From Octopus sinensis (lineage: Eukaryota), in the NCBI RefSeq assembly GCF_006345805.1, contig NC_043006.1, forward strand, positions 53,258,001-53,322,000: 64,000 bases of DNA. The letters are read 5' to 3'. Positions 8,990 to 53,770 of the stretch are shown here, piece by piece. Made by a program: the position numbers and the translations under genes. Position 1 is the first letter of the stretch; the number at the start of each line of letters is the position of its first letter. The notes under the pieces are model-generated. The model saw only the letters and a program-made list of their open reading frames with translations. It did not search any database and was not told the DNA's origin.

Positions 8990-9413
8990 GCGGAAAAACA
9001 AGGCCTGAACTTTTCTGGAGTAAGAGGTTAGTCGATTACACCAACCCCAGTGCACAACTGGTACTTATTTTATCGACCTTGAAAAGATGACAGACAAAGT
9101 CAACCTCGGCTGAATTTGAACTCAGAACATGAAGACGGACGAAATGCCGCTAAGCATTTTGCCCGGTGCGCTAACGATTCTTATTTCTTTTTTGCCCACG
9201 AAGGGCTAAACACAGAGAGGACAAACAAGGAGAGACTAAGGTATTAAGTCGATTACATCGACCCCAGTGCATAACTGGTACTTAATCTATCGACCCTGAA
9301 AGGATGAAAGGCAAAGTCGACCTCGGTGGAATTTGAATTCAGAACGTAACGGCAGACGAAATACTGCTAAGCCATTTCGCCCGGCGTGCTAACGTTTCTG
9401 CCAGCTCGCCGTC
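8990..9413 (-). mobile_element. Two adjacent family C SINEs; the right-hand copy has the Tx1-like tail
   Basis: Core ggtcgactttgcctttcatcctt..ggtcgata..taagtaccag appears twice in reverse complement; tail cccacgaagggctaaacacagagaggacaaacaag at ~9195-9230. Confidence 0.85.
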
Positions 9414-10024: not shown

Positions 10025-10375
10025 CACTAGCATCATATTCTTTTCTACTCTAGGCACAAGGCCCGAAATTTTTTTTGGGCGGGGGGCAGTCGATTAGATC
10101 GACCCCAGTATACAACTGGTACTTAATTTATCGCCCCCGAAGGGATGAAAGGTAAAGTCGATATCGGCGGAATTTGAACTCAGAACGTAAAGACAGACGA
10201 AATACTTATTTCTTTACTACCCACAAGGGGCTAAACACAGAGAAGACAAACAATGGCAGACAAACGGATTAAATCGATTATATCGACCCCAGTGCGAAAC
10301 TGGTCCTTAATTTATCGACCCCGAAAGGATGCAAGGCAAAGTCGACCTCGGCGGAATTTGAACTCAGAACGCAGC
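10025..10375 (-). mobile_element. Family C SINE dimer
   Basis: Two cores head-to-tail. The junction gacgaaatac|ttatttctttactacccacaagggg is at ~10205. Confidence 0.85.
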
Positions 10376-15278: not shown

Positions 15279-15757
15279 CACATATATGCATGTGTGCGTA
15301 TATATTATGTACATATGTGTGTTATACATATGCATAACATACATACATATACACGCACGCACATATATGTACACATCCAGTCACACATGAAGGGCTTCTG
15401 TACACTTTCTCTCTACTGTTACATTTCACTCATCAGCTGCAGAGAATTATTATTGTATGCATATAGTGTAAACGTATATATGCGTACGTTTGCACATACA
15501 CGCGTGCGTATGTGTATTTCGCTTCTGAATTTCATGGTGACAGTTCTGACTGCTGCAGCTGATATCGCCGTTGTTGTGTTCCCTATTCTTTTTTGTACTA
15601 TGATGTGACACTGCAACAATATTTTAAAGTGCCTGCGCCTCTGCATCTGCTGAACTCTGGCAGTGAACCGCTTTCAATGAATGTCTACATGATGTCGCCT
15701 CGAATGTTGTATCTCATGACTATGCTCCACACATTTTACTGGTATCAGAGCAATGTA

Positions 15758-16307
15758 ATGGGTTGTCCGAAAAGTTCGTGCCGATTTATAGCAGCTTACA
15801 TTTCGACTTATTTTAGAACGTGGTTGAGTCCATAAAATAGGATTTAACTACACCTCCATTTAGAGCACAGTTTAAGCTAACTTTTCGTGGAAGAAGGTTT
15901 ATGTTCCTATAACCTGTGTTAATTCTGTAACCCTTTAAAATGGAAAATAAGAAAGTTAATTTTCGGCACTTGATACTTTGGGAAGCAGACAAAAATTGCT
16001 GCAGCTCGGCTGGGATATGTTACCCTACCCTCCATATTCACCAGATATTGCTTCTTCGGATTTCCACTTATTCAGATCTCTGCATAATAGTCTTCATTGT
16101 AAAAATTTCAATTCCTTGGATGACGTAAAAAGATACCTTGGTGAATTCTTTGCCATGAAACCACCTCAATTCTGGGAAGAGGGTATTTTCAAGTTAAAGG
16201 AAAAATGGAGACGCATTGTGCAATTATGGTTCATAATTGGTTGATTAAAAATGTAATGGCAAGTATTTATTGACCTTTTCCGTTCCTTTAAAAATCGGAC
16301 AACCCAA
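15758..16307 (+). mobile_element. Internally deleted mariner element
   Basis: TIR (t)tgggttgtccg..aagttcgtg / cggacaacccaa, TA on both sides. The N-terminus MENKKVNFRH is fused to the C-terminus LPYPPYSPDIASSDFHLFRSL (mariner YSPDLAP-type motif). Confidence 0.9.
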
Positions 16308-27282: not shown

Positions 27283-27620
27283 CATATATGCGACAGGCTT
27301 CTTTCAGTTTCCGTCTACCAAATCCACTCACAAGGCATTGGTCGGCCCGGGGCTATAGCAGAAGACACTTGCCCAAGATGCCACGCAGTGGGACTGAACC
27401 CGGAACCATGTGGTTGGTTAGCAAGCTACTTACCACACAGCCACATATATATATATAACGGGCTTCTTTCAGTTTTCGTCTACCAAATACCCTCAGAAGG
27501 CTTGGTTGACCCGAGGTTATAGGAGAAGACACTTGCCCAAGGTGCCACGCAGTAGGACTGAACATAAAAACCATATGGTTGGTAAGAAAGCTTCTTACCA
27601 CACAGCCACGCCTTCGCCTA
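26640..27620. mobile_element. Cluster of four family D SINE pieces, minus strand
   Basis: Repeated reverse-complement head (ttccgtctaccaaatcc..cttgcccaaggtgccacgcagt) and tail (gtttcagtcatttgactgcggccatg) modules separated by (AT)n. Confidence 0.8.
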
Positions 27621-27625
27621 GTACA

Positions 27626-27863
27626 TACCTATTTCTTTATTACCCACAAGGGGCTAAACATAGAAGGGACAAACAAGGACAGACATAGGTATTAAGTCGA
27701 TTACATCGACCCCAGTTCGTAACTGGTACTTAATTTATCGACCCCGAAAGGATGAAAGGTAAAGTCGACCTCGGCGGAATTTGAACTCACAACGTAACGG
27801 CAGACGAAATACCGCTAAGTATTTCGCCCGACGTGCTAACGTTTCTACCAGCTCTCCGCCTTA
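27626..27863 (-). mobile_element. Family C SINE, full length, with Tx1-like tail
   Basis: Head aaggcggagagctggtagaaacgttagcacg, core, tail ttgtttgtcccttctatgtttagccccttgtgggtaataaagaaat. Candidate TSD atacct. Confidence 0.9.
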
Positions 27864-37937: not shown

Positions 37938-39430
37938 TGTGTGTTTGCGTGCGTGCATGCTCACCCGTGTGTTTATGGGTGGAAGAAAGTAAAAACCGGC
38001 GAGTTACTATAGCATGTGTATTATTTTCCGAAGCAATGTCAGCTGTAGACAAACGTCAGAAGTAGGATCACCAAGTGAGTCAAAGACCACACCCAACAGA
38101 ACATGCACTGCCCTCCCTCATGCACTAGATTAGATTCTTGACATTGTACTGACACTATGTGTTGTTACATGACACACCCTGCTGACATACAGCTCAAAGT
38201 ACAGATGACTTTGCCACGCGAGATTTTAATATTCTTGTAGGGTTTCTAATCTCAAAAACATCTCTCTCACTTTCCTTATGAGATTTGTATTCGCTTGAGA
38301 AGTTTAGGTGCGACTGACGGACAGAAAGGGGAGGGAGAAATAGAGAAAGGTAAAGAGTGAGAGAGAGAAAGAGAGGGGAAAGAGAAGGAAAGGTGTATGT
38401 GTGTGTGATAGGGTGCGTGTAAAATTGAGAAGAATTGTATATTTGTGTGTTACAGTTCAGCCTAGGTGATGGGCGTTTATGAGTGAATAAGGAGAGTTTG
38501 TATGTGTATGTATGCATGTTTTGCATGTTCAGTTTTTAAAAGAAGGACTGGTTTCCAACAAAGATACAATGCTCTATCGTTGAAATGTAGATAACAAAAA
38601 CAAATTCACATTTTAAACTTAAGAGAAGTCTTACACATTTTTACTATTCCGCCTACAGATTACTTTTGTAATTCCGTGTCAGCTGGTTGTCTTTTCTGTT
38701 TTTGCGGAAAACCCCAGGTTTTCCAGATTGCCACTTATAAAACCAAGTGCATCAGTTATTATTGATATAAATGTGAACTGAAGATGTCGTTCGTAGTTAC
38801 CCTCCTTCTCTTTGATTCTCGAAGGGATTTTCACCTCAGCAGAGGTGAATATTTTAATTAAATTAAGTTTAATTTAATTTAATTTAAATTAAAATATTAA
38901 CAACACTTAAGTTGGCCTGACTCAAGCGAGGAAATAAACGGTGTTGTGGCATAATGTATCTTCTCTTTTGATTTCTAAACATTATGCTGTAATTTAGGGA
39001 AGATTTGGCTGCTATTTCTAGAATGCCGGGAATCCACGTAAAGGTTTCGTATGTTTTGTTCCCATAGAGACCAATTTCCGTGTGTCTGGCAATTAAGGCT
39101 AACATTACATGAGTTTTAAATATTTGCAACTTTTTTATTATTAATTTCTAAAAAACAAAAGAATTAATGCGATTTTCGTCATCGGTATACAAAACTACAT
39201 ACATCAGAACTATATCTTTTTTTAAATAGTCCGGTGAAAATATTTCTTAAACTATAAGTGGTTGGAGAAAATTTTACAAGATCCAATAAATGTTTTGTAA
39301 CATGATTTTCCTGCGTTCTATCTTTTAATAACGAATTCTTTGAAATAGGTTTAACGTAGAGATGAGAAGCAGCTCAATATGCCTTAATTTAGAGAGTAAA
39401 CTGGTATATGGGATATGTTAGGGTATTGTA

Positions 39431-39581
39431 TTGGGTTGTCCGGGAAGTTCGTACCGATTTATAGTAGCTTACCTTTCGACTTATTTTAGAACATGGTTGA
39501 GTCCATAAAATAGGATTTGACTACACCTCCGTTTAGAGCACAGTTTAAGCTTTTCGTGAAATAAGAATTATGTCCCTACAA
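39431..39581 (+). mobile_element. Mariner deletion derivative, 5' part (split by the Helitron)
   Basis: TA|ttgggttgtccgggaagttcgt TIR; collinear with 15758-15912. Confidence 0.9.
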
Positions 39582-40214
39582 TCTCTCTATATATAAAACT
39601 GAGAATGTGTGTGTCTGTCTGTCTGTGTGTTTCCCTAAAACTTGAGAACTACACAATCAATTTCATTCAAATTTTACACATGCCTTACTTGGGGTCCGGG
39701 GAGTGTCATCGGCAAAAACTTTTTTAACTTTTTGCCTAGGGCGAGCCCACATCAATATCATATCTTCTCCACTACGATTCCCTAAAACTTGAGAACTACA
39801 CAACCAATTTCATTCAAATTTTACACATGCCTTACTTAGGGTCCATGTAATTTCATGGGAAAAAAATGTTCAACTTCTTGCCTAGAGCGAGCCCATAGCA
39901 ATATCATATCTTCTCCACTATTTCAGTATTACGTGTTAAAAGTGAAACAAAAACATTTCTCTATTTTATGTCAGATGCTTTCACTTTAACAATAAAAATA
40001 ATAATAACAATTGAATTATATGTAGTAAGTAATAATTAAAATCAAACTAAAGTATAATATAATCGTAACATAACAAAAGTAAAAATAGCAATTGGTATAA
40101 AATTGCATCAATGACTTGAACTTGAATAAGTGGTTTCACATGAATGGGAATAAATAAAAATAAAATTAGTGTGCAGAAATGAAATAGTCCAGATGGATAA
40201 TAAAAACTTAAATT

Positions 40215-40276
40215 AAAGAAAAGACTATTGTCAATAAAGTATACAATGTAGAGAAAAAAGAAGATTTGAACACCTG
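40215..40276 (+). pseudogene. Older Tx1-type ORF1 relic, left half
   Basis: KEKTIVNKVYNVEKK, then after a frameshift RFEHL; continues in frame at 50954 as EESTIEKCLG. Confidence 0.55.
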
Positions 40277-42202
40277 TCCGAAATCTATCCACATGTGTTG
40301 TGAGTTATTTTATATGTGAAAATTGGAAAAAGACTGTTAAAAAATTGTCAAAAAGTTGAATCGCGCGAGGCGTTTGCCGCTGCGTGTTTGAACCTTTTAT
40401 AGAAGGTGTGTCGACCCTCAAGTCATGGAGACTTACGCGGGGGTCGCCACAACAAAAAGTGACGAGTCACTTAGAATAAAAGAAGTGTTCTTTAGAAAAG
40501 AACAATTGAAGGAATACGAGAAGTTCGTCAAAAGGGAGGGTGACAGCGTGAAGCTGGTCCCGCCTGTGGAAACAATAGAAGAAAAAAATAACAAGACGAT
40601 AACGTATAGAACGCAAGATAGAAACACGAGAAAACTGGTGAGAGTGACGATTGAAGAAATAGAGAAATGTCTGGGGGACATCATGAAAAAAGCGACTTTT
40701 GTAGACAGAGGAAAGAAATATGGTACGGTGGAGGTGAGATGCGCAACAAGGAAGTGGCGGCCTCATTGGCTTCCACTGTCCTGAAAGCGGAAAATTTCAC
40801 CATGTGGCCGACGTATAAAGGAAGACGAGGGGTACGGGTAAGAGTCCCAAGGTGCCCCCAATATTAAAACAGAAATGCTGGTAACAGCCATTATTGGGGC
40901 AGCAAAAGAGGAAGTAGAAATAGGGTCAATTAAGGAGACGAACGTTGTAAATTGGAAGGGATTCGGAGTCGAGTTGTGGCTGATGGCCACAATTGAAGAC
41001 ATCGAAAGATTTCCCTTCCAAATAGAAATAGAAAACGAAAAAACAATTAGTGTAATAGTGGAAGGCAGAAAACCGAATTGCTACCTGTGCGGCTCAAGAG
41101 GGCACATAAAAAAGGAATGTCCGCTGTATGAATTCACAGCGGAGCAAAAAGAGACACAAAGTGGAGAGAAGGAAAACGAACACGAAGGAAAGAACAGCGA
41201 AAACAAGGAAAAGGAAATAACGGAGAAACAACAAGAGAAGGGAAGTAACAGCGCACTGAAGAAAATGAAAACAAAGGGAAGAAGATAGTAGAAAAGGAGC
41301 AAAATTCACAGGGTGCAGAAGTAGAGGAGAAGGAGCCAAGGCAGAAGCAAGAGAAAGAAAAGGAAAGTACATTAAAGGAAAGAGAAAAAGCAGGAAAAGA
41401 ACAAGAGAAGGAACAGAACCAAGAGAAAGGAAAAGATGGTATGCAAAAAGGAAAAAGAAAAAAACAGGAAAGGAACTTAAGGCACAGGGTGAGAGACGGC
41501 AGACAAAGAGCCAAAAAGACAGAGAAGGAAAAAGAAAGAAGAGAAAGCAAAAAGAGAGAAAGAGAGAACCGAGGGAGGAGAAAAAAGAGGAAGTAAGTCC
41601 TAAGAGAAAAACTAGAGAAAACGCAGGTACGAATAGAAATTTCAAATACTATGGAACGTTGATCCATCACAAGCACTGTGAGGAGATGGAAAATTTAATA
41701 AGCGAAACAAACGGATATACGTGGGTCAGGATGGGCACCGAATGGAAAGAAACAGGTGCACTCGTCCACGAGAACGACGCCGAGGCGTTCATCGAGGCAG
41801 CTGGCGAGAACGTGTTAAAACATATGAAATGCCGACTTCCAAGGTGGCCTCGAACGATGGAAATTTACTCAGATTTGGTAGACATAATGGAGTATATATA
41901 AAAGAAAAGGTATTGTGAAAACTTTAATTTGGAAATGATAAAAGAACTTTAAATTCTGGAAAAAAAAAAAAGAAATGTTGAACTTTGTAAAACTTTTTGA
42001 AATGTATGTTGAAAATGTATAAAATGTTTTATTTGAAAATATTGTTGACCAATTAAAAATAAATGACGAAATGTAACCGCTCGATTTCGGGGATCGAGTG
42101 GGCATTGCACCACATTGTACAAACTTCATAATTCATTATTCATTTTCCCGATTGTATTGTCCCATCTATGTAGCCCCTAGTGGGTAATAATAAAACAACC
42201 TG
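40277..42202 (+). mobile_element. ORF1-only non-LTR unit 1 (1926 bp)
   Basis: Starts tccgaaatc; ATG 40425; frameshifted gag-like ORF1 with CYLCGSRGHIKKEC zinc knuckle, a K/E-rich linker and a C-terminal domain ending 41901; 3' end shared with the LINE; no ORF2. Confidence 0.85.
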
Positions 42203-43954
42203 TCTGAAATCTATGCGTGTTGTTATATGTGACTAGACGGTGAAATTTTTTCTGTGTAAATTGATTTGATATCGCGCGAGGCGTTTGCCTCCACGTGTGG
42301 AAACCTTCCGAAGAAGGTGAATTGACGCTCTAGTCATGGCGACTTACGCGGAGGTCACCGGGGAAAATAACGATTCGTCGATAATCATAAAGGAGGTTTT
42401 CTTTGAGAAGGAGAAACTCAAAGAATATGAAAAGCTCTTCAAAAGGGAGGGTGATAGCGTGAAGCTAATCCCCCCCCCGCGAAAGCAAAAGAGGATAAAG
42501 AAAGCAAGACGGTGACATACAGAACCCAAGACAAAAATACGAAGAAACTGGCAAGAGTGGAGATAGTCGAAATTGAAAAATGTCTGGGAGACATAATGGG
42601 GAAAATAACCTACGTGAGTAGAGGCAAGAAATTTGGTACGGTGGAGGTGAGATGTGCAACGGAAGAAATTGCGACCTCACTGGCTACCACCGTACTAAGA
42701 GCCGAAAAATTCACAAGGGAAGAAGAGGGGTCCGGGTTAAAATCCCGAATATACCCCCAGAAGTGAAAACAGAATGGCTGGCAACAGCTATTCTAGGAGC
42801 AGCAGAAGAGGAAGTGGAGGTGGAATCTATTAGGAGTCCAACGCGGTAAACTGGAGAGGATATGGGGTAGAATTGTGTTGATGGCCACAAAAGAGGATAT
42901 TGAAAGGTTTCCATACAGAATTGAAATTGAAGAGGAAAAAACCCTCAGCGTAATTGTAGAGGGGAGAAACCAAACTGTTACTTGTGTGGGACAAGGGGGC
43001 ACATTAAAAAAGAGTGCCCGTTATACGAATTCGTAGCGGAGTGCGAGCAGGAACTTGAAGAAAAGAAGAATACTGTAAATGAGAAAGAAACTAGAAAAGG
43101 AAACAAAACACAAGAGAAAGGAAATAATAAGTCAATGAAGGAAAAGAATAAAAGAAAAGAAAGAAATAGAACCAAAACAGAGTCAGGAAAAAAAAAGGAA
43201 AAAGAAACAATAGGAAAAAAACAAGAGAGGGATCAGAATCAAACGAAAAGAAAAGACGGCACACAAAAGGAAAAAGAAAAGGAACATAAAACACCGAGAG
43301 AAGAGAGAACAGACAAAGAACCAAAAAGACAAGAGAAGGAAGGAGAAGAAAAGAAGGCAAAAAGAGAGAAAGAGAGAAACAAAGAGAGAGAACAAGGAAG
43401 AAATAAGCCCGAAAAGGAAAATGAAGGAAAACGTAGGACGGAAACAAGATTACTATTACTACAAGTTAGTAACCTTCCATTTCTGCCCTATAATGAAAGA
43501 CTTGACAAGTGAAACGGAGGGACATATATGGGTCAACAGGATGACCGACCGGTGGCAGGAGATTGCTCTAATCCCCGAAGAAAGAGCCGCTGAGTTCCTC
43601 AGAGCTGCCGGAGAGAGTGTAATATTTTACACGAAGGTTCGAGTGAGAGAGCGGCTGCCTGAGGGCTCAGTGTTAGACTTCAGAGAAGTGGAAACAATTA
43701 TAGAGTATGTATAGAATTGTGAGAGGGAAAAAAAAAGAGAAAAAAGAAAATTTTGTGAAATATATGTGACGAAAATGTAACCTCTTGATTCCGGGGATCG
43801 AGTGGACATTTACATCTCATTGTAAATATTCTTTCATATGTCATTTTTACTTTTTATTTTTTCCTTTTCTTGTCATTCGCTTTCTTATTTTAAGTTCCCC
43901 GATTGTATTGTCCCATCTATGTTCGCCCCTTGTGGGTAGTAATAAAATCACCTG
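42203..43954 (+). mobile_element. ORF1-only non-LTR unit 2 (1752 bp)
   Basis: Starts tctgaaatc; ATG 42336; CYLCGTRGHIKKEC; stop 43714; shared 3' end; no ORF2. Confidence 0.85.
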
Positions 43955-45709
43955 TCTGAAATCTATGTGTGTTGTTATATGTGACTAGACGGTGAAATTT
44001 TTTCTGTGTAAATTGATTTGATATCGCGCGAGGCGTTTGCCTCCACGTGTGGAAACCTTCCGAAGAAGGTGAATTGACCCTCTAGTCATGGCGACTTACG
44101 CGGAGGTCACCGGGAAAAATAACGATTCGTCGATAATCATAAAGGAGGTTTTCTTTGAGTAGGAGAAACTCAAAGAATATGAAAAGCTCTTCAAAAGGGA
44201 GGGTGATAGCGTGAAGCTAATCCCCCCCCCCGCGAAAGCAAAAGAGGATAAAGAAAGCAAGACGGTGACATACAGAACCCAAGACAAGAATACGAAGAAA
44301 CTGGCAAGAGTGGAGATAGACGAAATTGAAAAATGTCTGGGAGACATAATGGGGAAAATAACCTACGTGAGTAGAGGCAAGAAATTTGGTACGGTGGAGG
44401 TGAGATGTGCAACGGAGGAAATTGCGGCCTCACTGGCTACCACCGTACTAAGAGCCGAAAAATTCACAAGGGAAGAAGAGGGGTCCGGGTTAAAATCCCG
44501 AATATACCCCCAGAAGTGAAAACAGAATGGCTGGCAACAGCTATTCTAGGAGCAGCAGAAGAGGAAGTGGAGGTGGAATCTATTAAGGAGTCCAACGCGG
44601 TAAACTGGAGAGGATATGGGGTAGAATTGTGGTTGATGGCCACAAAAGAGGATATTGAAAGGTTTCCATACAGAATTGAAATTGAAGAGGAAAAAACCCT
44701 CAGCGTAATTGTAGAGGGGAGAAAACCAAACTGTTACTTGTGTGGGACAAGGGGGCACATTAAAAAAAGTGCCCGTTATACGAATTCGTAGCGGAGTGCG
44801 AGCAGGAACTTGAAGAAAAGAAGAATACTGTAAATGAGAAAGAAAACATAGAAAAGGAAACAAAACAACAAGAGAAAGGAAATATAAGTCAATGAAGGAA
44901 AAAGAAATAAAAGAAAAGAAAGAATAGAACCAAAACAGAGTCAGGAAAAAAAAAGGAAAAGAAACAATAGGAAAAAAACAAGAGAGGGATCAGAATCAAA
45001 CGAAAAGAAAAGACGGCACACAAAAGGAAAAAGAAAAGGAACATAAAACACGAGAGAAAAGAGAAACAGACAAAGAACCAAAAAGACAAGAGAGGAAGGA
45101 GAAAGAAAAGAAGGCAAAAAGAGAGAAAGAGAGAAACAAAGAGAGGAGAACAAGGAAGAATAAGCCCGAAAAGGAAAATGAAGGAAAACGTAGGACGGAA
45201 ACAAGATTACTATTACTACAAGTTAGTAACCTTCCATTTCTGCCCTATAATGAAAGACTTGACAAGTGAAACGGAGGGACATATATGGGTCAACAGGATG
45301 ACCGACCGGTGGCAGGAGTTGCTCTAATCCCCGAAGAAAGAGCCGCTGAGTTCCTCAGAGCTGCCGGAGAGAGTGTAATATTTTACACGAAGGTTCGAGT
45401 GAGAGAGCGGCTGCCTGAGGGCTCAGTGTTAGACTTCAGAGAAGTGGAAACAATTATAGAGTATGTATAGAATTGTGAGAGGGAAAAAAAAAGAGAAAAA
45501 AGAAAATTTTGTGAAATATATGTGACGAAAATGTAACCTCTCGATTCCGGGGATCGAGTGGACATTTACATCTCATTGTAAATATTCTTTCATATGTCAT
45601 TTTTACTTTTATTTTTTCCTTTTCTTGTCATTCGCTTTCTTATTTTAAGTTCCCCGATTGTATTGTCCCATCTATGTTCGCCCCTTGTGAGTAGTAATAA
45701 AATCACCTG
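43955..45709 (+). mobile_element. ORF1-only non-LTR unit 3 (1755 bp), near-identical to unit 2
   Basis: ATG 44088, stop 45470; differs from unit 2 mostly by single-base indels. Confidence 0.85.
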
Positions 45710-45928
45710 TCTGAAATCAATTTTTGCGTCTGTTAGTAAGTTATATATTTTGCTCTCATAGTATTATCTCTGTTTTTCTATATTGTCTGTATACTTGTTT
45801 GTTTACTGTTGTTTAACTGAAGAAGTCAGCCTTCGCGCGAGTTCTTCGCGTTGGTGTTCCCCCCTCCGTGGGGGAAAACTACAATTATTTTGGAATCTCC
45901 AAAGGCTTGTTAAAGCCATTTGTTTAAG

Positions 45929-47297
45929 ATGGAGTCCCCCATCTCCTATTCGCCCGTGACGAGCGAGGACGAATACCCGGCGTTGACATCAGGAAAAAAA
46001 GAAGCGTTGTCGCCAAGAAAAAAAGAGGCGTTATCGCCGAAGAAAAAGGAGGCGGCATCGCCCAAAAAAATAGAAAAATCAATACCAGCATCAACTCCAG
46101 CGAAAAAATTCGCTGAAGTAGCTGGGAAAAAAATTAAAACAATAAACGTGGAAAATCTAGAAAAATTCGCAGACAGTGTAAAGAAAGAGGGCACGGAAGT
46201 GACTGTGGTCGCAGACGTACAGAAACATGAAGATATAGAGAGGAAAAGAATTATTTACAAAACGTACAACACAGCTACAAGAATGATTCAGAAAATCGAG
46301 GAGAAAAAATAGGGTTATGTTTGAAACCAATAATGGACAAAATAACATATATAAACAGAGGTAAAAAATACGGCACAGTGGAGGTGCGTTTTACCTCTGA
46401 AGAGATAGCGAAAAAACTATCAATGGAGACTTTCAAAGCAGAAAACATCGTCCTATTACCATTATATAGAGGAAAGCGGACATCAAAAATCACAATGAAC
46501 AACATTCCCCCAGAGGCAGATGCAGAATGTCTGGTGGCAGCAGTGATGGTAGGCCTGGAGAAAAAAATAAACATCCTCCAGGCCACAGTGGAAGAAGAGG
46601 AGTTCTGGAAAGGACAAAAGATAGTGATAGCCATTCAGGCTGAGACACAAACACTGGAAGAAATTCCAGAAACAGTAAAAATTAGCGAAGAGGAAAAAAT
46701 AACTGTTTTCGTGGAGGGCAGGAGGCCGAGGTGCTTCGGCTGCGGCAAGAAGGGTCACGTAAGGGCGGAATGCCAACCCCAACCCAAACCGCAGGAAGCA
46801 CCGAAGCCAAGAGAAAAAGATGTGTCACCAGAAGCAACGTCGGACGGCCCAGAAGGGAAGACCGAAGGTGTGGAGGTGACGGTGACAGCAGAACCAGCGG
46901 CGGAGGAGAACAAGAGCGAGGAAAAGATAAATGAGGAGGGGTGGAAAAAATTACCGAAAAAAAAAAAAGAAAAACGGATACCACCCCACCCAGAATAATT
47001 TTAAAAAAGAAGAGAGAGACAATGGACTCATATATGGCCGTAAAGGCAGCGAATAGCAGACTAGGAAACGTGTTGGCTGCTATGGCCAAGGTAGAGAAAG
47101 TGGAAAAGAAAAATGACTTTGTGATCTACAGAATAGGCCGGAAGGATTACGGGCGGATAAAATCCGAATTCTTCCACGACGTAGGCCCACTTAGATTGGA
47201 GGTGACATCTCCACATATATTCGAGGGCCTACGTCAGACTCCCCCACGAGGCCCAGAAAGAGTTGGAAGAACGAGAGAAAACCGAACCACTGATATA
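45929..47297 (+). CDS. LINE ORF1 (gag-like, CCHC zinc knuckle), frameshifted in this sequence
   Basis: ORFs 45920-46312, 46321-46998 and 46941-47384 join across A-runs; CFGCGKKGHVRAEC; RGKKYGTVEVRF is shared with units 1-3. The 3' end is approximate. Confidence 0.8.
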
Positions 47298-47307
47298 AAG
47301 GTAAGTA

Positions 47308-50300
47308 ATGGATTGCATTTATGTTGGTTGTTTGAATGTGCGCGGCCTGGGAGCAGGCTGGAAGCAAGGTCGCTTCCTGCATGATATCAGGTCGCGTAAT
47401 TTAGATGTTATTGTTGCTACAGAAACCCGATTAGAGGGGCCAAGAGGTCTGCTCCCGCTGTTTGACGGCTACGAGAGTTTTTTCTCTCCTGGCAGTCCTA
47501 CTGGCGGAAGTGGGGTGTTGGTCCTAATTAAAAGAAACCGGGTTTCTGAGAAAAAGTTAATTTTTGCAGATCCAGAAGGTAGACTGGTCGTCATGGATTT
47601 GACGTTCAGTAATGGTAAAGTTATCAGACTGGTTGCAATTTACGCACCCAACCATACAGGGCAAAGTGATTATTTTCGTGAACTAGAAAACTTTCTTGGT
47701 ACTTCGCATTCATTAGTTGTGCTAGGAGACTTTAACACAATTTGCAAAGCGGATGTAGATTGTGTTGGCTCGCGTCCAGATAGAAAAGGTAACAGTGGCT
47801 TCATGGAACTGCTAAGCCGCTTTGAGCTAGCAGATCCTTATAGGCTGGAATTTCCGAACGCTCCATTGTGGACATGGTCAAACAGCGACGGATCTTCCAG
47901 GTCATATTTAGATAGAATACTAATTAGAAAAGTAGACAGTAAAATAGCTAAGTATCCACAGTTTTACCCGATCAGCTACAGTGATCATAAAATGGTCACT
48001 TGTAAGCTTGACATAGATAAGGTTAAAAATAGAGGATCCGGTTACTGGAAACTTAATACGTCCCTTTTGGCGATTAAGGAGTACAAAGACCGGATTAGGG
48101 ACATAATTCAGAGGGCACTATCTGGTACCATCATTAATAACAAATGGTGGTACGCCCTCAAACGAGCCATCAAGTTTGAGTCTATTAGATATAGCATAGG
48201 AGTAGTGGCTAGAGAGGCTAGAAGGGAAACTACTCTAGTTAAGGAATTAGAGGAAGCCATGAAAACTGGCTCTGCGGCTCAGGTGGCGTCTAAGAGACTG
48301 GTGTTAAACCAGCACCTCGAGGCCAAACACATGGGCTGCATTGTCAGGGCTAGAATCCGCCATATGGGATGTGAAGGAATCAACGCCGTGAGATGGGCCC
48401 GAGTGGTAGAAGCACAGCATGGTAACGATGCCACGATTCGATCTTTGACGAACCAACAAGGTGAGTTGATAAACGAACCCGAGGAGATGTGTGAGGCCTT
48501 TCAGGAGCACTTTGCTCAGCTTTTCGGTGAGTGCGGCGGACTGGATAGGAGCAGGGCCTATACGGACCTACTCGACGGGCTGCCGCGCTTATCGGGGCGA
48601 GATGCGGAGGGCTGTGAAGGGCCAATCACGCATGAGGAGGTGGTTGAGGCAATGGCGGACTGCGGCGCGGGCAAGGCGCCGGGTTTGGATGGTCTACCCT
48701 ATGAGTTATATAAGAGTATGCCAGACTTGTTCGGGCACCTACTGGCGGAGGTCTATGCGAACTGGCAGCAGAACGGGCTTATACCCAGATCTGTGCGCCG
48801 GGAGTAGTGAAACTCGTCAGAAAGGACCCAGCAAGGGGGAGTGCATTGATAATTTCAGGCCCATCACTCTGCTAAATACAGAGTTGAAGATTTTGGCCAA
48901 AGTGTTATCGAAAAGATTGGCGCGTGTCGCGGATGGTCTGATCGGGGAGGCACAGACATGTGCCGTTCCGGGCAGAACCATTCAGGATAATCTCCATCTA
49001 ATGCGGTACACTATAGAGGGGTTTAATAGTGATTCTGGCAAGGGTGGGGCACTGGTCCATTTAGACCAATCTAAAGCATTTGATAGGGTCGACCATCGTT
49101 ACCTGGTATCCGCCCTGGCACAGTTCGGGCCCAGCCTTGGCTTCCTCAGGTGGATTATCCAAATTTATGATAACATCGACTCGGTAGTTCGGGTGAACGG
49201 CTTCTTGTCGAAGCCGTTCAAAATCAAACGCTCGGTTCGTCAAGGGTGTCCGCTCTCCCCGCTTTTGTACGTGATGGCTCTAGAGCCATTACTGCGAAAA
49301 CTGAGCGGCATCCCGAGACAGCCAGGTAATGGAAAATCAGTGTCAGCGTACGCGGATGACATCACCATCATCGTAACCGAAATGGACCACCTATGTAAAG
49401 TAGGCAAGGCCATAGAGGTTTACGAGACGGTGACAGGAGCAAAAGGTAATCGCGAAAAGTCAGTCGGCTTGCAACTCGGCACCTGGAGAGGCAAGGCGAT
49501 GCCTCCTGACAGCGTCGTGGGACGTTGGACGGAGGGTCCGATTAAATTGCTAGGGGTCTGGTTCGGTCCAGACCTCCAAATAGAGAAGAATTGGGGCGAG
49601 GTAACGAGCAAGGTGGCTGCAGTAGCCAAGACCTGGTCTTGGCGGTGGCTATCCCTGAAAGGGAGGTCGGAGGTGGCCAATGTGTTTATCGCATCGGTTA
49701 TCACCTTCCGCCTTTCCGTCGTTCCTTGCCCTGATTCGTGGTTGACCAAGTTGGAAAGACAGCTCTTCTACTTCTTGTGGAAGGGCGGGAAACCACTTGT
49801 GAAACGCTCTACTTGCTGTCAACAACCGTTAAAGGGTGGGCTAGGGATGCCTTGGCTGATGATGCGCAGACATGCGCTGAGGTTAAGACATCTGTGGCTC
49901 TACCTGGATGGTGAACGGGTGTGGTCTTCGCTAGCAAAACTGATGTTTCCCAAGTTCACTAGTTTCGGTGGATGGGAAACCTGGCTGAATCGTAGATCGA
50001 AACTTGGTACTTGGTACACAGAGTGTCGCAAGGCTCTCCTGCTATTCCATCGCTCGGGCAACGCCTGCGGTGGGGGTTCCACCACATTCTTCTATAGAGG
50101 GTTGGTAGAGGCGGAATGTGAAGATACCTTGGGAGAAGCCCTAGGTCTCGACGATAATCAGCTGGCCAGTCTGTTCCGACGTACGTTCAAGCCGAAGACA
50201 CTGGACAACTTCCAGAAGTCTCTGGCATGGCAATGCTACAGAGGAGCTCTACCTGTTCGGGATAAACTCGCAAGGCACGGTGGCCATGACAGTCCGATAT

Positions 50301-50701
50301 GTCCAAGATGCGGGCGGGATAGGGAAACCGTCCCGCACGCTATTGTTCATTGTCCGGACGTGTCTGAGGTGTGGGTTTATGCCGAACAGCTGTTGTCAGG
50401 TACACGAAGAGTACAGCTGTCGACTGAGTCGATTACAAAAATTGACCCACCGGATTTCCTCGCGAATGAAGGTAAGTTTCGTTTTCTCGTTGTAGTAGCA
50501 ATCGCGAAAGAGGTGATATGGAAGACGAGAATGAAAGGTCTACAGTCAGGCAAGTTCATCTCCGGCCCTGGTTTGATGAAGTATTTCATCTATCACCTGA
50601 AAAGGAAGATAGGGCTGGAGAGAATTTGCCTAACTAGGAGAGTGTATGAAAAACGATGGAAAGATGTAGCACGAAAGTTGCGAGTGGATGATACAACATA
50701 A
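47308..50701 (+). CDS. LINE ORF2: APE endonuclease + reverse transcriptase + C-terminal zinc finger
   Basis: EN motifs LNVRGL, ATETR, LGDFN, YLDRIL, SDH. RT motifs LDQSKAFDRVDH, RQGCPLSP, YADD. C-terminal CPRCGRDRETVPHAIVHC. Frame broken only near 48800-48835. Confidence 0.95.
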
Positions 50702-50953
50702 ATGTAATACCAAGCGCAACCAAAAGTATCAGTGGGGAGGCGGGGCTCGTGGGGTCCGAGCTAAACCCGCACCCACTCCACCCGTAATGTCTTCCGGTCT
50801 GTCCCATCATTCGATTTCTGTCCATTTATTGTAATTTCATGAAAATTTTAAAATCCGTTTTATTGTAAAAACCCATTCGTGTGTCTGACCCCATCATCAG
50901 ATTGTATTGTCCCATCTATGTTCGCCCCTTGTGGGTAATAATAAAACAACCTG

Positions 50954-51250
50954 GAGGAAAGCACCATCGAAAAGTGTCTTGGTGCGACTATGAAAGATAT
51001 CTAACCAGAGGCGGTAAATTCTCCACAATAGAAGCAAGGTTCGAGTCAACGGAGCGTGTAAGAGAGTACTCGACTCGAACTTGCAAAGTGGAAATATTTT
51101 ATTTTTACCTTTATATCTGGGACGTAGGACGAGCCGGATAAAAATTTAAAATGCACCCCCCCCCCCAGAAGTTGAGGTAGGCTGGATTGTAGCCACACTT
51201 CTATACAAGAGGGAGGACAAGATACAATTGATCGAAATTGCAAGAGACGG
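50954..51250 (+). pseudogene. Older Tx1-type ORF1 relic, right half
   Basis: EESTIEKCLGATMK / YLTRGGKFSTIEARFEST / GRRTSRIKI..PPEVEVGWIVATLL aligns with IEKCLGDIMGKITYVSRGKKFGTVEVR..GRRGVRVKIPNIPPEVKTEWLATAIL of units 1-3. Confidence 0.75.
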
Positions 51251-51438
51251 GCTTACAATTCCAGTCTGTTATATATTTTGAGTATTGTTATCACTAGCGA
51301 TATCAAGATATAACTTTGTATTTTGTATTTTATGTGTAGATGTATATATATAGATGTACATGTAATATGTACACATATATATACACATATATACATGCAC
51401 TAGCACTATGACTCGGCAACGACGGGTCATAATGCTTG

Positions 51439-51849
51439 TCTATGTTAATTTTGTAACCCTTTAAAATGGAAGATAAGAAAGTTCATCTTTGGCACTTGAT
51501 GCTTTGGGAAGCAGACAAAAATTGCTGCAGCTCGGCTGGGATGTGTTACCCCACCCTCCATATTCACCAGATATTGCTCCTTCGGATTTCCACTTACTCA
51601 GGTCTCTGCAGAATAGTCTTAATGGTAAAAATTTCAATTCCTTGGATGACGTAAAAAGATACCTTAATGAATTCTTTGCCATGAAACCACCTCAATTCTG
51701 GGAAGCGGGTGTTTTCAAGTTAAAGGAATGATGGAGACGCACTGTGCAACAAAATGGTTCATATTTGGTTGATTAAAAATATAATGGCAAGTATTTATTG
51801 TCCTTTTTCTTTCCTTTAAAAATCGGCACAAACTTTCCGGACAACCCAA
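51439..51849 (+). mobile_element. Mariner deletion derivative, 3' part
   Basis: MEDKKVHLWH fused to LPHPPYSPDIAPSDFHLLRSL; 3' TIR aaaaatcggcacaaactttccggacaacccaa. Confidence 0.9.
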
Positions 51850-52490: not shown

Positions 52491-53349
52491 TAGCTATTGA
52501 GACACTATATCCTTCAGAACTTCCATGCTTCCTGAAATCCGCCAACAGTATACCTGATGGTCTTTTTTTAATATATTTTTGTAGTGCACCTGAGCACTGT
52601 ATACAATAATTTCCTTCATTATATATCATTATATCATATGTCTGCTCGATCTGGGCTGGACTGGGGTTAAACAACAATATTATTAACATCACCACCATGA
52701 ATAACATTAATGCCACTCACCATCATCTCCTGAACTACTATCAATAACTACCGCCATCATCACCACCACCACCAATGACATAATTACCGCCAGCTAATAA
52801 TAGAACAAAGGATCGGCAACGGCGCTCGCGTTATGACCAAGTTCACGTTGATTGCCTCCGCAGTGGCCACCACCGATGAAGCCACTGCGTGGTGATTTGA
52901 CCTATTAAAATGACAACCAAATGTCTTTCATGACGATGACCACAGCTGGAATCCTTTTGACCATTGGACTATTCTTCCATGGTTAATACCGGGCAAGACA
53001 TCATCATCAATAACAACAACAATAGGTGTTCAAAAATAGATAGGTCAATGGAGAGAGTGCGCCATGTCCAAACTACGACACTTCATGCTACCACCTCCAC
53101 TCTATCATTACATGACTGAATGTGTAGTGTGATCCTCAGTTGGGCAGAGTCTTTGTATGATTAGAAAGAAGGATGTGTGAGTCGCGCTACATCATTCAGC
53201 TCTCTAACTTGTACCTCATGAGACTACTCGATCAAAACAACAACAATCATAACAATAACAGTAGCAAAATACAACATTCATCCTCTCTATCATTACATAA
53301 CATTTTCCTCCTTTACTGTGCTTATGCATCCACCTTTCCTTCACCTCAT

Positions 53350-53770
53350 GCCTATTTCTTTACTACCCACAAGGGGCTAAACACAGAGAGGACAAACAAG
53401 GACAGACAAACGGATTAAGTCGATTACATCGACCCCAGTGCGTAACTGGTACTTATTTAATCGACCCCGAAAGGATGAAAGGCAAAGTCGACCTCGGCGG
53501 AATTTGAACTCAGAACGTAGCGGCAGGCGAAATACCTGTTTCTTTATTACCCACAAGGGGCTAAACATAGAGGGGACGAACAAGGACAGACAAACAGATT
53601 AAGTCGATTACATCGACCCCAGTGCGTAACTGGTACTTAATTTATCGACCCCGAAAGGATGAAAGGCAAAGTCGACCTCGGTGGAATTTGAACTCAGAAG
53701 GTAACGACAGACGAAATACAGTTACGCATTTCTCCCGGCGTGCTAACGTTTCTGCCAGCTCGCCGCCTTT
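53350..53770 (-). mobile_element. Family C SINE dimer, both units with the Tx1-like tail
   Basis: Two cores and two tails; junction ggcgaaatacc|tgtttctttattacccacaagggg at ~53537. Confidence 0.9.

Follow-up and report, generated by a model that had tools for sequence, protein, structure and literature searches.

Structure of the locus

Within a 64,000-nucleotide stretch of the Octopus sinensis genome (assembly GCF_006345805.1, contig NC_043006.1, positions 53,258,001 to 53,322,000; hereafter the window, whose own numbering is used below), four retroelements lie head-to-tail on the plus strand with zero spacer between them. The first three carry only the first open reading frame (ORF1) of the kind found in long interspersed nuclear elements (LINEs); the fourth is a full-length LINE. 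A previous sequence-only reading of this DNA had reported four spacer-free units of 1926, 1752, 1755 and 5244 bp, and the coordinates agree. Unit 1 (40277..42202) belongs to an ORF1-only family that we call U1; its frameshifted ORF1 (~40425-41901) encodes a CCHC zinc knuckle, and the unit is 93-94% identical to units of two other loci (L002_u3, L003_u1 and L003_u2). Unit 2 (42203..43954) is an ORF1-only member of the basal 'w' subfamily of a second family, U2, and has a private 16-bp frameshifting deletion. Unit 3 (43955..45709) is likewise ORF1-only, is 99.4% identical to unit 2 and shares its deletion, which is absent from 24 other U2-type units. Unit 4 (45710..50953) is the L1/Tx1-type LINE, with an ORF1 at ~45929-47384 and an ORF2 at 47308-50701 that encodes apurinic endonuclease-like (APE), reverse transcriptase (RT) and zf-RVT domains; both frames are shifted.

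All four units end in the same ~55-nt tail, which contains AATAAA and lacks poly(A), and none of them is 5'-truncated. The conserved part of the tail (GATTGTATTGTCCC...GGGTAATAATAAAACA) lies at 50900..50948 in the LINE and at 42150-42197, 43901-43949 and 45656-45704 in the other units, all on the plus strand. Its 21-nt core, which also occurs in a family of short interspersed nuclear elements (SINEs), is found exactly four times in the window against zero expected by chance. The 14-mer ACCTGTCYGAAATC also occurs exactly four times in the 64 kb, at 40272, 42198, 43950 and 45705, that is, across the left edge of each unit. The shared tail had been noted earlier, together with the claims that units 1-3 carry only a zinc-knuckle ORF1 and that the ORF1s form three diverged groups; we found the single CCHC knuckle, and DNA and amino-acid identities separate the same three groups. 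The description of all units as apparently full length is correct for their length but not for their coding capacity, since every frame in the window is broken and none of the four units retains an intact one. In the LINE, private 1-bp deletions at 46301, 46945, 48799 and 48829 affect both ORFs. An exact-protein look-up with the 736-aa ORF of the window returned no record. An alignment of units 2 and 3 shows 11 substitutions and 21 single-base indels, most of which fall in homopolymers, and the 1-bp homopolymer indels of the window may be assembly noise. Given the 99.4% identity and the shared private deletion, unit 3 is probably a local DNA-level duplicate of unit 2.

The array does occupy 40277-50953, as first described, but it is part of a larger feature, a Helitron-like host element at 39582-51438 that encloses it. 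These limits are the points at which homology between loci starts (~39582) and stops (~51438). On the left, the host consists of an arm at 39582..40264, which starts at A|TC and has homologs at other loci, and of the first 12 nt of a segment that we call Y (TTTGAACACCTG, 40265..40276); these 12 nt hold the insertion point termed site A below, and their last 5 nt (40272-40276) begin the leftmost target copy with ACCTG. To the right of the array follow the rest of segment Y (right arm 1, 50954..51254) and right arm 2 (51255..51438), which has a second insertion point, site B (TTCCAGTCTGTTATA), at its start and the hairpin GACTCGGCAACGACGGGTC (51410-51428) followed by CTTG at its end. The host, in turn, interrupts a mariner-like element, the left part of which (39427..39581) matches window positions 15754-15915 at 88% and the right part of which (51439..51831) matches 15914-16302 at 92%. 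All of these features are on the plus strand.

Recurrence across octopus chromosomes

Using the frame-corrected ORF1 of units 2 and 3 as query, we matched nine annotated Octopus vulgaris proteins at 72-100% identity. The loci, reached through annotated proteins only, comprised the eight described here and one outside the host (L009). The O. vulgaris assembly (GCA_951406725.2) is chromosome-level and independent of that of the window. It contains the same layout at eight further loci on seven chromosomes: a left arm, n ORF1-only units (n = 8, 3, 2, at least 7, 1, 1, 4 and 3), one full LINE and, where the locus reaches that far, the right arm or arms. With the window included, the LINE is the 3'-most element at every host locus (9/9), and the 33 ORF1-only units are all found upstream of it. 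In the gene models of L001, the array appears as seven same-strand "uncharacterized" genes spaced by ~1.78 kb, a period that was missed by TRF run on this locus with a longest period of 500. The window itself, with 21 homopolymer-rich indels against 11 substitutions between units 2 and 3, has the marks of a noisy long-read assembly, and its tandem structure might for that reason be taken for an artefact; however, the same architecture at eight loci of GCA_951406725.2, with few indels, leaves this explanation next to no credence. The arrays are internal, situated 12-157 Mb into chromosomes of 74-226 Mb with host sequence on both sides, and the telomeric location of HeT-A/TART-type arrays was therefore not found.

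Related elements also occur in other settings. At L009 10220-12420 (O. vulgaris OX597815.1), a unit of a fourth ORF1-only family, ~75% identical to U2 and with a SINE-type tail, is located outside the Helitron-like host between another tail and a SINE, with AAACGTYAGCACGCCG repeated at both junctions. At L011 2480-20850 (O. sinensis CM016867.1, ~70.97 Mb), one ORF1-only unit is followed head-to-tail by at least four full-length LINEs of different subfamilies, with 60-98% amino-acid identity to the ORF2 of L006. No Helitron host arms are present there; copies of GAATACTCGTCAT mark three of the junctions and copies of GGATGTGATATAATGA two. Given this LINE stack, a single 3'-most LINE is not a rule of the wider family. 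In Argonauta hians, L004 7120-12013 (BAAFZT010000001.1) encodes a related LINE with 56% amino-acid identity in the RT and an intact 476-aa ORF1; no ORF1-only units were found within 7 kb upstream of it, and it appears solo.

The host element

The 5' end of the host reads A|TCTTTATATA, with a start pattern of A|TC(T)TTATATATATAAAACTGAG. Its 3' end at L003, L005 and L006 consists of the hairpin GACCCGGCAACGACGGGTC, TTTAATG and CTAG|T, the CTAG of other copies being CTTG in the window. The host thus has the 5' TC and 3' CTRR ends of Helitrons and a hairpin ~10 nt before the 3' end, and it is inserted between A and T with no duplicated target. The last feature is deduced from the comparison of the split mariner-like copy with its uninterrupted paralog in the window (15754-16302), which reads CCTATAA|CCTGTGTTAAT where the occupied copy reads CCTACAA(host)TCTATGTTAAT. 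In O. vulgaris the host flanks differ from locus to locus and are often (TA)n. No large ORF other than those of the retroelements is enclosed by the host ends, and the host would therefore be non-autonomous; a Rep/helicase gene and an autonomous partner were not searched for. On these structural hallmarks we refer to it as a Helitron-like, putatively non-autonomous element. It is a mobile element with many old, diverged copies: the left arm (~680 bp), which lies directly 5' of the array at L001, L002, L003, L006, L007, L008 and L010, is 89-96% identical between loci, and right arm 1 is 90-92% identical.

Several other features of the host and its surroundings were seen. The left arm contains a 144-bp internal tandem duplication (39631-39774 and 39778-39920, 88% identity). 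The arms of L001, L002 and L007 align by BLAST only from the second 144-bp repeat onward (query position 185), and they may hold a single copy. The mariner-like pair (15754-16302; 39427-39581 with 51439-51831) has a terminal inverted repeat (TIR) starting GGGTTGTCCGAAAAGTTCG.. and the remnant of a ..YPPYSPDIASSDFHLF motif. At L010 8442-8563, on the minus strand, an inverted and truncated host 3' end (hairpin and CTAG) is found ~50 bp upstream of where the occupied host begins at its 5' end; it was considered as an empty site but is not one.

Insertion sites and junctions

At each of the nine loci, the inserts sit at either of two exact positions in the host. Site A (window, L001, L005, L006, L008 and L010) is 12 nt inside segment Y, and site B (L002, L003 and L007) is at the start of right arm 2, ...GCTAACA|TTCCAGTCTGTTATA. 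Segment Y (~310 bp; window 40265-40276 and 50954-51254) is present in the site-A hosts, with 90-92% identity to the window at L005, L006 and L008, and is absent from the site-B hosts L002, L003 and L007. Its boundary reads GAAGA(Y)GCTAACAATTCCAGTCT in the former and GAAGAGCTAACATTCCAGTCT in the latter. Segment Y also has an inverted repeat, GGTTCGAGTC...GACTCGAAC. Nine host loci, all of them occupied sites, thus show a Tx1-like trait, namely integration at a specific sequence within a repeated target. An Rfam scan of 38-54 kb gave only sub-threshold microRNA-like matches in TA/CA repeats, and the target is therefore not a small nuclear RNA, 5S or rRNA gene.

Ahead of every unit at site A stands ACNTG followed by a 9-mer, and the rightmost copy, adjoining Y, is always GAGGAAAGC. 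In the window this rightmost copy (ACCTG GAGGAAAGC, 50949..50962) is close to the host consensus, and the others are at 40272-40285, 42198-42211, 43950-43963 and 45705-45718 on the same strand, giving five copies of ACCTG plus 9-mer around four units. The pattern of n+1 target copies around n elements also holds at L001, L005, L006, L008 and L010, with imperfect 9-mer copies, and at site B (L002, L003 and L007) n+1 copies of TTCCAGTCT surround n elements. The 9-mers are particular to the locus. In the window it is TCYGAAATC at the U1 unit, both U2 units and the LINE; at L006 it is GCTCCAAGC at U2 and LINE; at L001 it is GAGGAAATC at the LINE and then TCGGAAATC eight times, so that nearly all junctions there are identical. 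The pentamer at the left edge of the host likewise equals the internal pentamers of the same locus (ACCTG in the window, ACGTG at L001 and L010, ACATC at L008). Such variants are common to units of different families at one locus, while same-subfamily units that are 99% identical show different junctions at different loci.

For these reasons the junction is duplicated host target sequence and not an element end; the true 3' end of the elements is ...GGGTAATAATAAAA(CA/TC)(A). The ACCTG|TCYGAAATC motif, which the sequence-only reading had regarded as a common terminus, does stand at each junction, but is derived from the target. Its suggestion that elements insert repeatedly at their own ACCTG junction can be kept as far as repeated insertion at one junction is concerned, with the junction reassigned to a duplicated target in the host. 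From the two edges of occupied hosts, we infer an empty site A of the form ...GAAC ACATGGAGGAAAGC ACC... and an empty site B of the form ...GCTAACA TTCCAGTCTGTTATA... (reconstructed sequences GATTTGAACACATGGAGGAAAGCACC and GAAGAGCTAACATTCCAGTCTGTTATATA), and likewise the exact nick positions.

Changes in the junction sequence appear from right to left, and copies farther left inherit them. This bears on the possibility that an array was made in a single event, either by copying of a read-through, multi-unit RNA or by an RT that jumped from the LINE RNA onto ORF1-only RNAs. The R2 reverse transcriptase is known to jump between templates end to end, and a cis preference for the ORF2-encoding RNA would account for the single 3'-most LINE. 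However, each junction copies host sequence in the variant that matches the edge of its own locus, which foreign RNA ends would not do. The stepwise inheritance of junction changes and the nested order of subfamilies described below fit successive insertions, and we consider a single event very improbable.

The LINE and its subtypes

The protein domains identified in unit 4 are Exo_endo_phos (E 1.7e-14), RVT_1 (E 3.8e-29) and zf-RVT (E 6e-9), that is, an N-terminal APE followed by an RT in one ORF2, with a C-terminal Cys-rich domain, as in the L1/Tx1 superfamily. The LINE at L006 has an intact ORF2 of 1129 aa, residues 3-865 of which align to human L1 ORF2p (E 9e-65), with R2 at E 4e-26. We thus classify unit 4 as a LINE of the L1/Tx1 superfamily; the similarity shown is to the L1 superfamily only, and a place in the Tx1 clade itself is putative. 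A homology search with ORF2 found no O. vulgaris protein, and the best matches were 56-61% identical, e.g. in Argonauta hians. The intact ORF2 at L006 could possibly belong to an active partner that serves as enzyme source for the ORF1-only units, and the system may be currently active.

Pairwise similarity of LINE copies from different loci is 97.4-98.6% over the 3' half and reaches 99.5% over the 5' half. Two subtypes can be distinguished, subtype A at site A and subtype B at site B. Comparison of L003 11204-16221, L007 11166-16332 and L002 13006-15088 with window 45710-50953 showed that subtype B is 77-84% identical to subtype A in the half comprising the 5' untranslated region (5'UTR), ORF1 and APE, and ~95% identical in the RT/3' half. 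Subtype B is therefore a mosaic (recombinant) element, the divergent half of which coincides with a different insertion site, and the divergence in the ORF1/APE half would fit a changed endonuclease specificity.

ORF1-only families and the shared tail

There are at least three ORF1-only families, of which U1, U2 and Ux are 68-76% alike at the DNA level; for U1 against U2, identities of 70-81% were measured. U1-type ORF1 shares 34% amino-acid identity with the LINE ORF1 (E 2e-42), over the N-terminal ~210 residues only, up to the knuckle. The remainder, a Lys/Glu-rich linker and a C-terminal domain of ~85 aa, has no significant match to the ORF1 or ORF2 of the LINE, and Pfam recognizes only the CCHC knuckle in the ORF1-only protein. 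An origin of the C-terminal domain by fusion of part of ORF2, or of part of the LINE's own ORF1, was considered and rejected, as no significant similarity was found. Intact ORFs of ~473 and ~493 aa occur in L002_u1 and L002_u3, respectively, the latter a 493-aa frame of family U1. U2 units have 421-426 open codons, but a run of eight to ten C residues (C8-C10) puts the initial ~50 codons (MATYAEV...KLIPPP) in a different frame from the rest. This break is present in every U2-type unit, in the window (42460-42480 and 44215-44235) as at L001, L005 and L006; it could be a shared frameshift, with a downstream start or slippage, or a systematic homopolymer error.

The ratio of nonsynonymous to synonymous substitution rates (dN/dS) between ORF1-only families is 0.19-0.22, with synonymous sites near saturation. 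ORF1 is thus under purifying selection, and the families are lasting partners of the LINE, not deletion debris. Since they form families of their own, have a dN/dS of ~0.2 and possess their own C-terminal domain, ORF1-only units are not recent deletions of the adjacent LINE. The case that the sequence-only reading had set against itself, with ORF1-only units found nowhere else and explained as local deletions of one LINE, is refuted by the same observations and by the many other loci.

The LINE, families U1, U2, Ux and Uy, and the SINE all have a conserved tail of ~50-57 nt, the consensus of which folds into an invariant 4-bp hairpin with zero covariation. Presumably, the ORF1-only units borrow the ORF2 protein of the LINE through this tail. 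U1 and U2 units were both found at site A and at site B, as expected for elements mobilized in trans. The units directly next to subtype-A LINEs are U2 units, and U1 units adjoin subtype-B LINEs. The earlier proposal of an autonomous and non-autonomous system with a common 3' tail is supported by these data.

The SINE family is tRNA-like and has copies on the minus strand at 9063-9344, 10088-10369, 27511-27792, 53234-53515 and 53418-53699, whose final ~45 nt (..TGTCCCCTCTATGTTTAGCCCCTTGTGGGTAATAAAGAAAT) are similar to the tail of the LINE. Several of them are joined head-to-tail, with 184 nt separating, for example, those at 53234 and 53418. The same or a related LINE may thus mobilize the SINE, and stacking may be general for this tail group.

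Age and succession of the inserts

The relationships of ORF1-only units across loci were assessed with an identity matrix and a tree, in which U2 units of different chromosomes interleave. L001_u1 and L001_u2, for example, are 99% identical to L005_u2-u5 on another chromosome and only 95% to L001_u8, which is itself 99% identical to L006_u1. The units at different loci thus represent independent insertions. Each O. vulgaris unit has 0-3 private substitutions in 1.78 kb. The inserts are much younger than the host copies, because LINEs are 97.4-99.5% alike between loci where the host arms are 89-96% and right arm 1 90-92% alike.

This age gap favors the targeting of pre-existing hosts and disfavors an alternative in which the Helitron-like host captured the LINE, or the LINE with ORF1-only units, once and then spread the block, with unequal crossing-over changing the copy number. 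The transport of foreign DNA by Helitrons is well known, and capture would explain why the arms, the single LINE and the order are constant across host-associated arrays, and why U2 always adjoins a subtype-A LINE and U1 a subtype-B LINE. At the same loci, however, host arms are 4-11% diverged, LINEs 0.5-2.6%, and units of the same subfamily no more than 1%. The host also has two distinct insertion points, and array composition does not match by position: the unit next to the LINE is of a derived type at L005 and of a more basal type at L001. We therefore view capture and carriage by the host as unlikely.

A second alternative is that a single ORF1-only insertion beside the LINE was expanded by unequal exchange or slippage in the manner of a satellite. 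Units 2 and 3 of the window, 99.4% identical with their shared private deletion, are what this would produce, as are units u5-u7 of L001 (99-100% alike) and the nearly uniform junctions of that locus. Yet arrays mix families of only 68-76% DNA similarity (U1 and U2 in the window; Ux, U2 and U1 at L002), units resemble those of other chromosomes more than the ones next to them, and 5' ends are heterogeneous within L005 and L008. Local duplication contributes to arrays but does not create them, and an origin by this route alone seems to us improbable.

Within U2, 151 sites separate the basal 'w' from the derived 'a' subfamily, and intermediates hold nested subsets of these. The fraction of derived states drops from the left arm towards the LINE (rho -0.98, -0.85, -1.0 and -0.5 at L001, L005, L008 and L010), and in a within-array permutation test 0/20,000 permutations matched the observed order. 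The subfamilies thus succeed one another in order along the arrays. This stratification, together with the stepwise drift of the junctions, suggests that arrays would grow at their 5' (left) end and that the LINE would have arrived first. Movement as concatemers, proposed in the sequence-only reading, is contradicted as the main origin of the arrays, since junction variants are bound to the locus, array composition differs and subfamilies are stratified in nested order.

Discussion

We consider it likely that the arrays result from a site-specific LINE and its ORF1-only partners, which re-insert at a regenerated target in a Helitron-like host so that the array grows at its 5' end. The LINE, with its APE, RT and C-terminal zinc domain, would target a short sequence in the host, and target-primed reverse transcription would duplicate ~5-15 nt of it (ACATG plus GAGGAAAGC at site A; TTCCAGTCT(GTTATA) at site B). 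This would restore the target on the 5' side of the new copy, where it could be hit again. At the sampled host loci the LINE would arrive first, and ORF1-only elements would then insert successively at the leftmost target copy, yielding a spacer-free array in time order. Local unequal exchange would add some copies, such as units 2 and 3 of the window.

Some observations weigh against this model. Site specificity is judged on occupied sites only, the pre-insertion sequence being deduced from both edges, and all loci but one were sampled via annotated ORF1-only proteins. Compared with the right copy, the first target copy on the 5' side often has mismatches at 1-4 of 9 positions; either the duplication is therefore inexact, or the RNA brings some of the 9-mer with it. 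TCTGAAATC is common to the window and L010, whose LINEs are closely related. U2 subfamilies are ~5% apart while private mutations are nearly absent, and L008_u3 looks mosaic; the subfamily ladder could in part reflect coexisting or recombinant sources instead of time. No intact full-length ORF1 was found among the LINE copies translated (window, L001, L005 and L006). Finally, the model offers no mechanistic reason why the LINE should come first at 9/9 loci and account for 0/33 later insertions, when at L011 at least four LINEs are stacked. The LINE-first pattern may have arisen because the LINE filled empty sites early on and the parasites then came to dominate, or because the units' own ORF1 protein targets occupied sites.

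The latter idea can be taken further, though we regard it as doubtful. ORF1-only elements might have evolved in octopus for the reason that applies to HeT-A-like elements at fly telomeres, a niche where copies are stacked head-to-tail. The ORF1 protein, with its distinct C-terminal domain, would guide the borrowed RT to the 5' edge of the resident LINE, which would account for the restriction of ORF1-only units to positions upstream of the founder LINE at host loci. If true, this would be an independent, non-telomeric replicate of the HeT-A/TART division of labor, in a mollusc and in a different LINE superfamily.

Every component of the octopus system has precedent. HAL1 is a mammalian ORF1-only derivative of L1 that uses the ORF2 protein in trans, with dispersed and polyadenylated copies. 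The octopus units are likewise ORF1-only derivatives of an L1-type LINE that would depend on ORF2 in trans, but they are site-specific and arrayed, their 3' tail is specific, and their C-terminal domain has no relation to the ORF1 of the partner LINE. Tx1L of Xenopus laevis inserts in the DNA transposon Tx1D (PMC1950540, PMC6719617). As in octopus, an L1/Tx1-group LINE with an APE there occupies one specific site in a multicopy DNA transposon and forms composite elements, with target duplication and an ORF1 containing zinc knuckles. In octopus, however, the host is Helitron-like and not a TIR element, two sites serve two LINE subtypes, the site is re-used repeatedly, and ORF1-only partners dominate the arrays. 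The R1 tandems of Drosophila have a 33-nt target duplication between copies (PMC5932611). Re-insertion at a self-regenerated target, identical target copies between units and later unequal exchange are common to R1 double insertions and the octopus arrays. R1 differs in that it hits 28S rDNA and stacks its own copies, whereas the octopus arrays stack several families chronologically, some of them without RT, and the duplicated copy drifts stepwise. SIDEs are non-autonomous internal-deletion elements derived from R2 and from R2/R1 that keep the 3' end needed by the RT and share the target of the LINE (PMC3414825). They too are parasites of a site-specific LINE, but SIDEs are short and non-coding, while in the octopus units ORF1 is retained under selection, and these units did not arise by recent deletion.

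In HeT-A, TART and TAHRE, ORF1(Gag)-only elements persist, diversify and rely on the ORF2 of another element (PMC13534243). The sequence-only reading had likened the octopus array to this system, and the likeness stands for the head-to-tail mix of RT-encoding and abundant ORF1-only elements. In other respects the arrays differ: they are internal, with host arms on both sides, the LINE belongs to the L1 superfamily and not the Jockey clade, junctions lack poly(A), variable 5' truncation is absent, and growth would be by insertion with target duplication, not by addition to an end. Since the junction is a duplicated target within a Helitron-like host, the system is closer to Tx1L in Tx1D and to R1 double insertion than to end-addition at telomeres.

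A 2026 repeat annotation of O. vulgaris counted 13 'L1-Tx1' families and Helitron families without element-level detail (PMC13282606). Our literature searches found no description of the octopus combination of LINE, ORF1-only units and Helitron-like host, and this combination appears to be undescribed. Annotations of cephalopod genomes should be expected to contain composite blocks of 12-25 kb that are now shown as runs of "uncharacterized protein" genes. The arrays provide an ordered record of subfamily succession, and together with the stepwise drift of the target they offer a natural read-out of 5' junction accuracy in target-primed reverse transcription. The interest of the system is solid for transposon biologists and modest beyond the field. 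Persistent ORF1-only LINE lineages are best known from the telomeres of Drosophila. According to a recent survey, repeated loss of ORF2 among Jockey elements is seen in telomeric but not in non-telomeric ones (PMC13534243). The octopus elements show the same outcome in an unrelated LINE superfamily, at an internal, site-specific stacking niche, which suggests that the stacking niche is what favors Gag-only parasites, without any need for a telomere as such.

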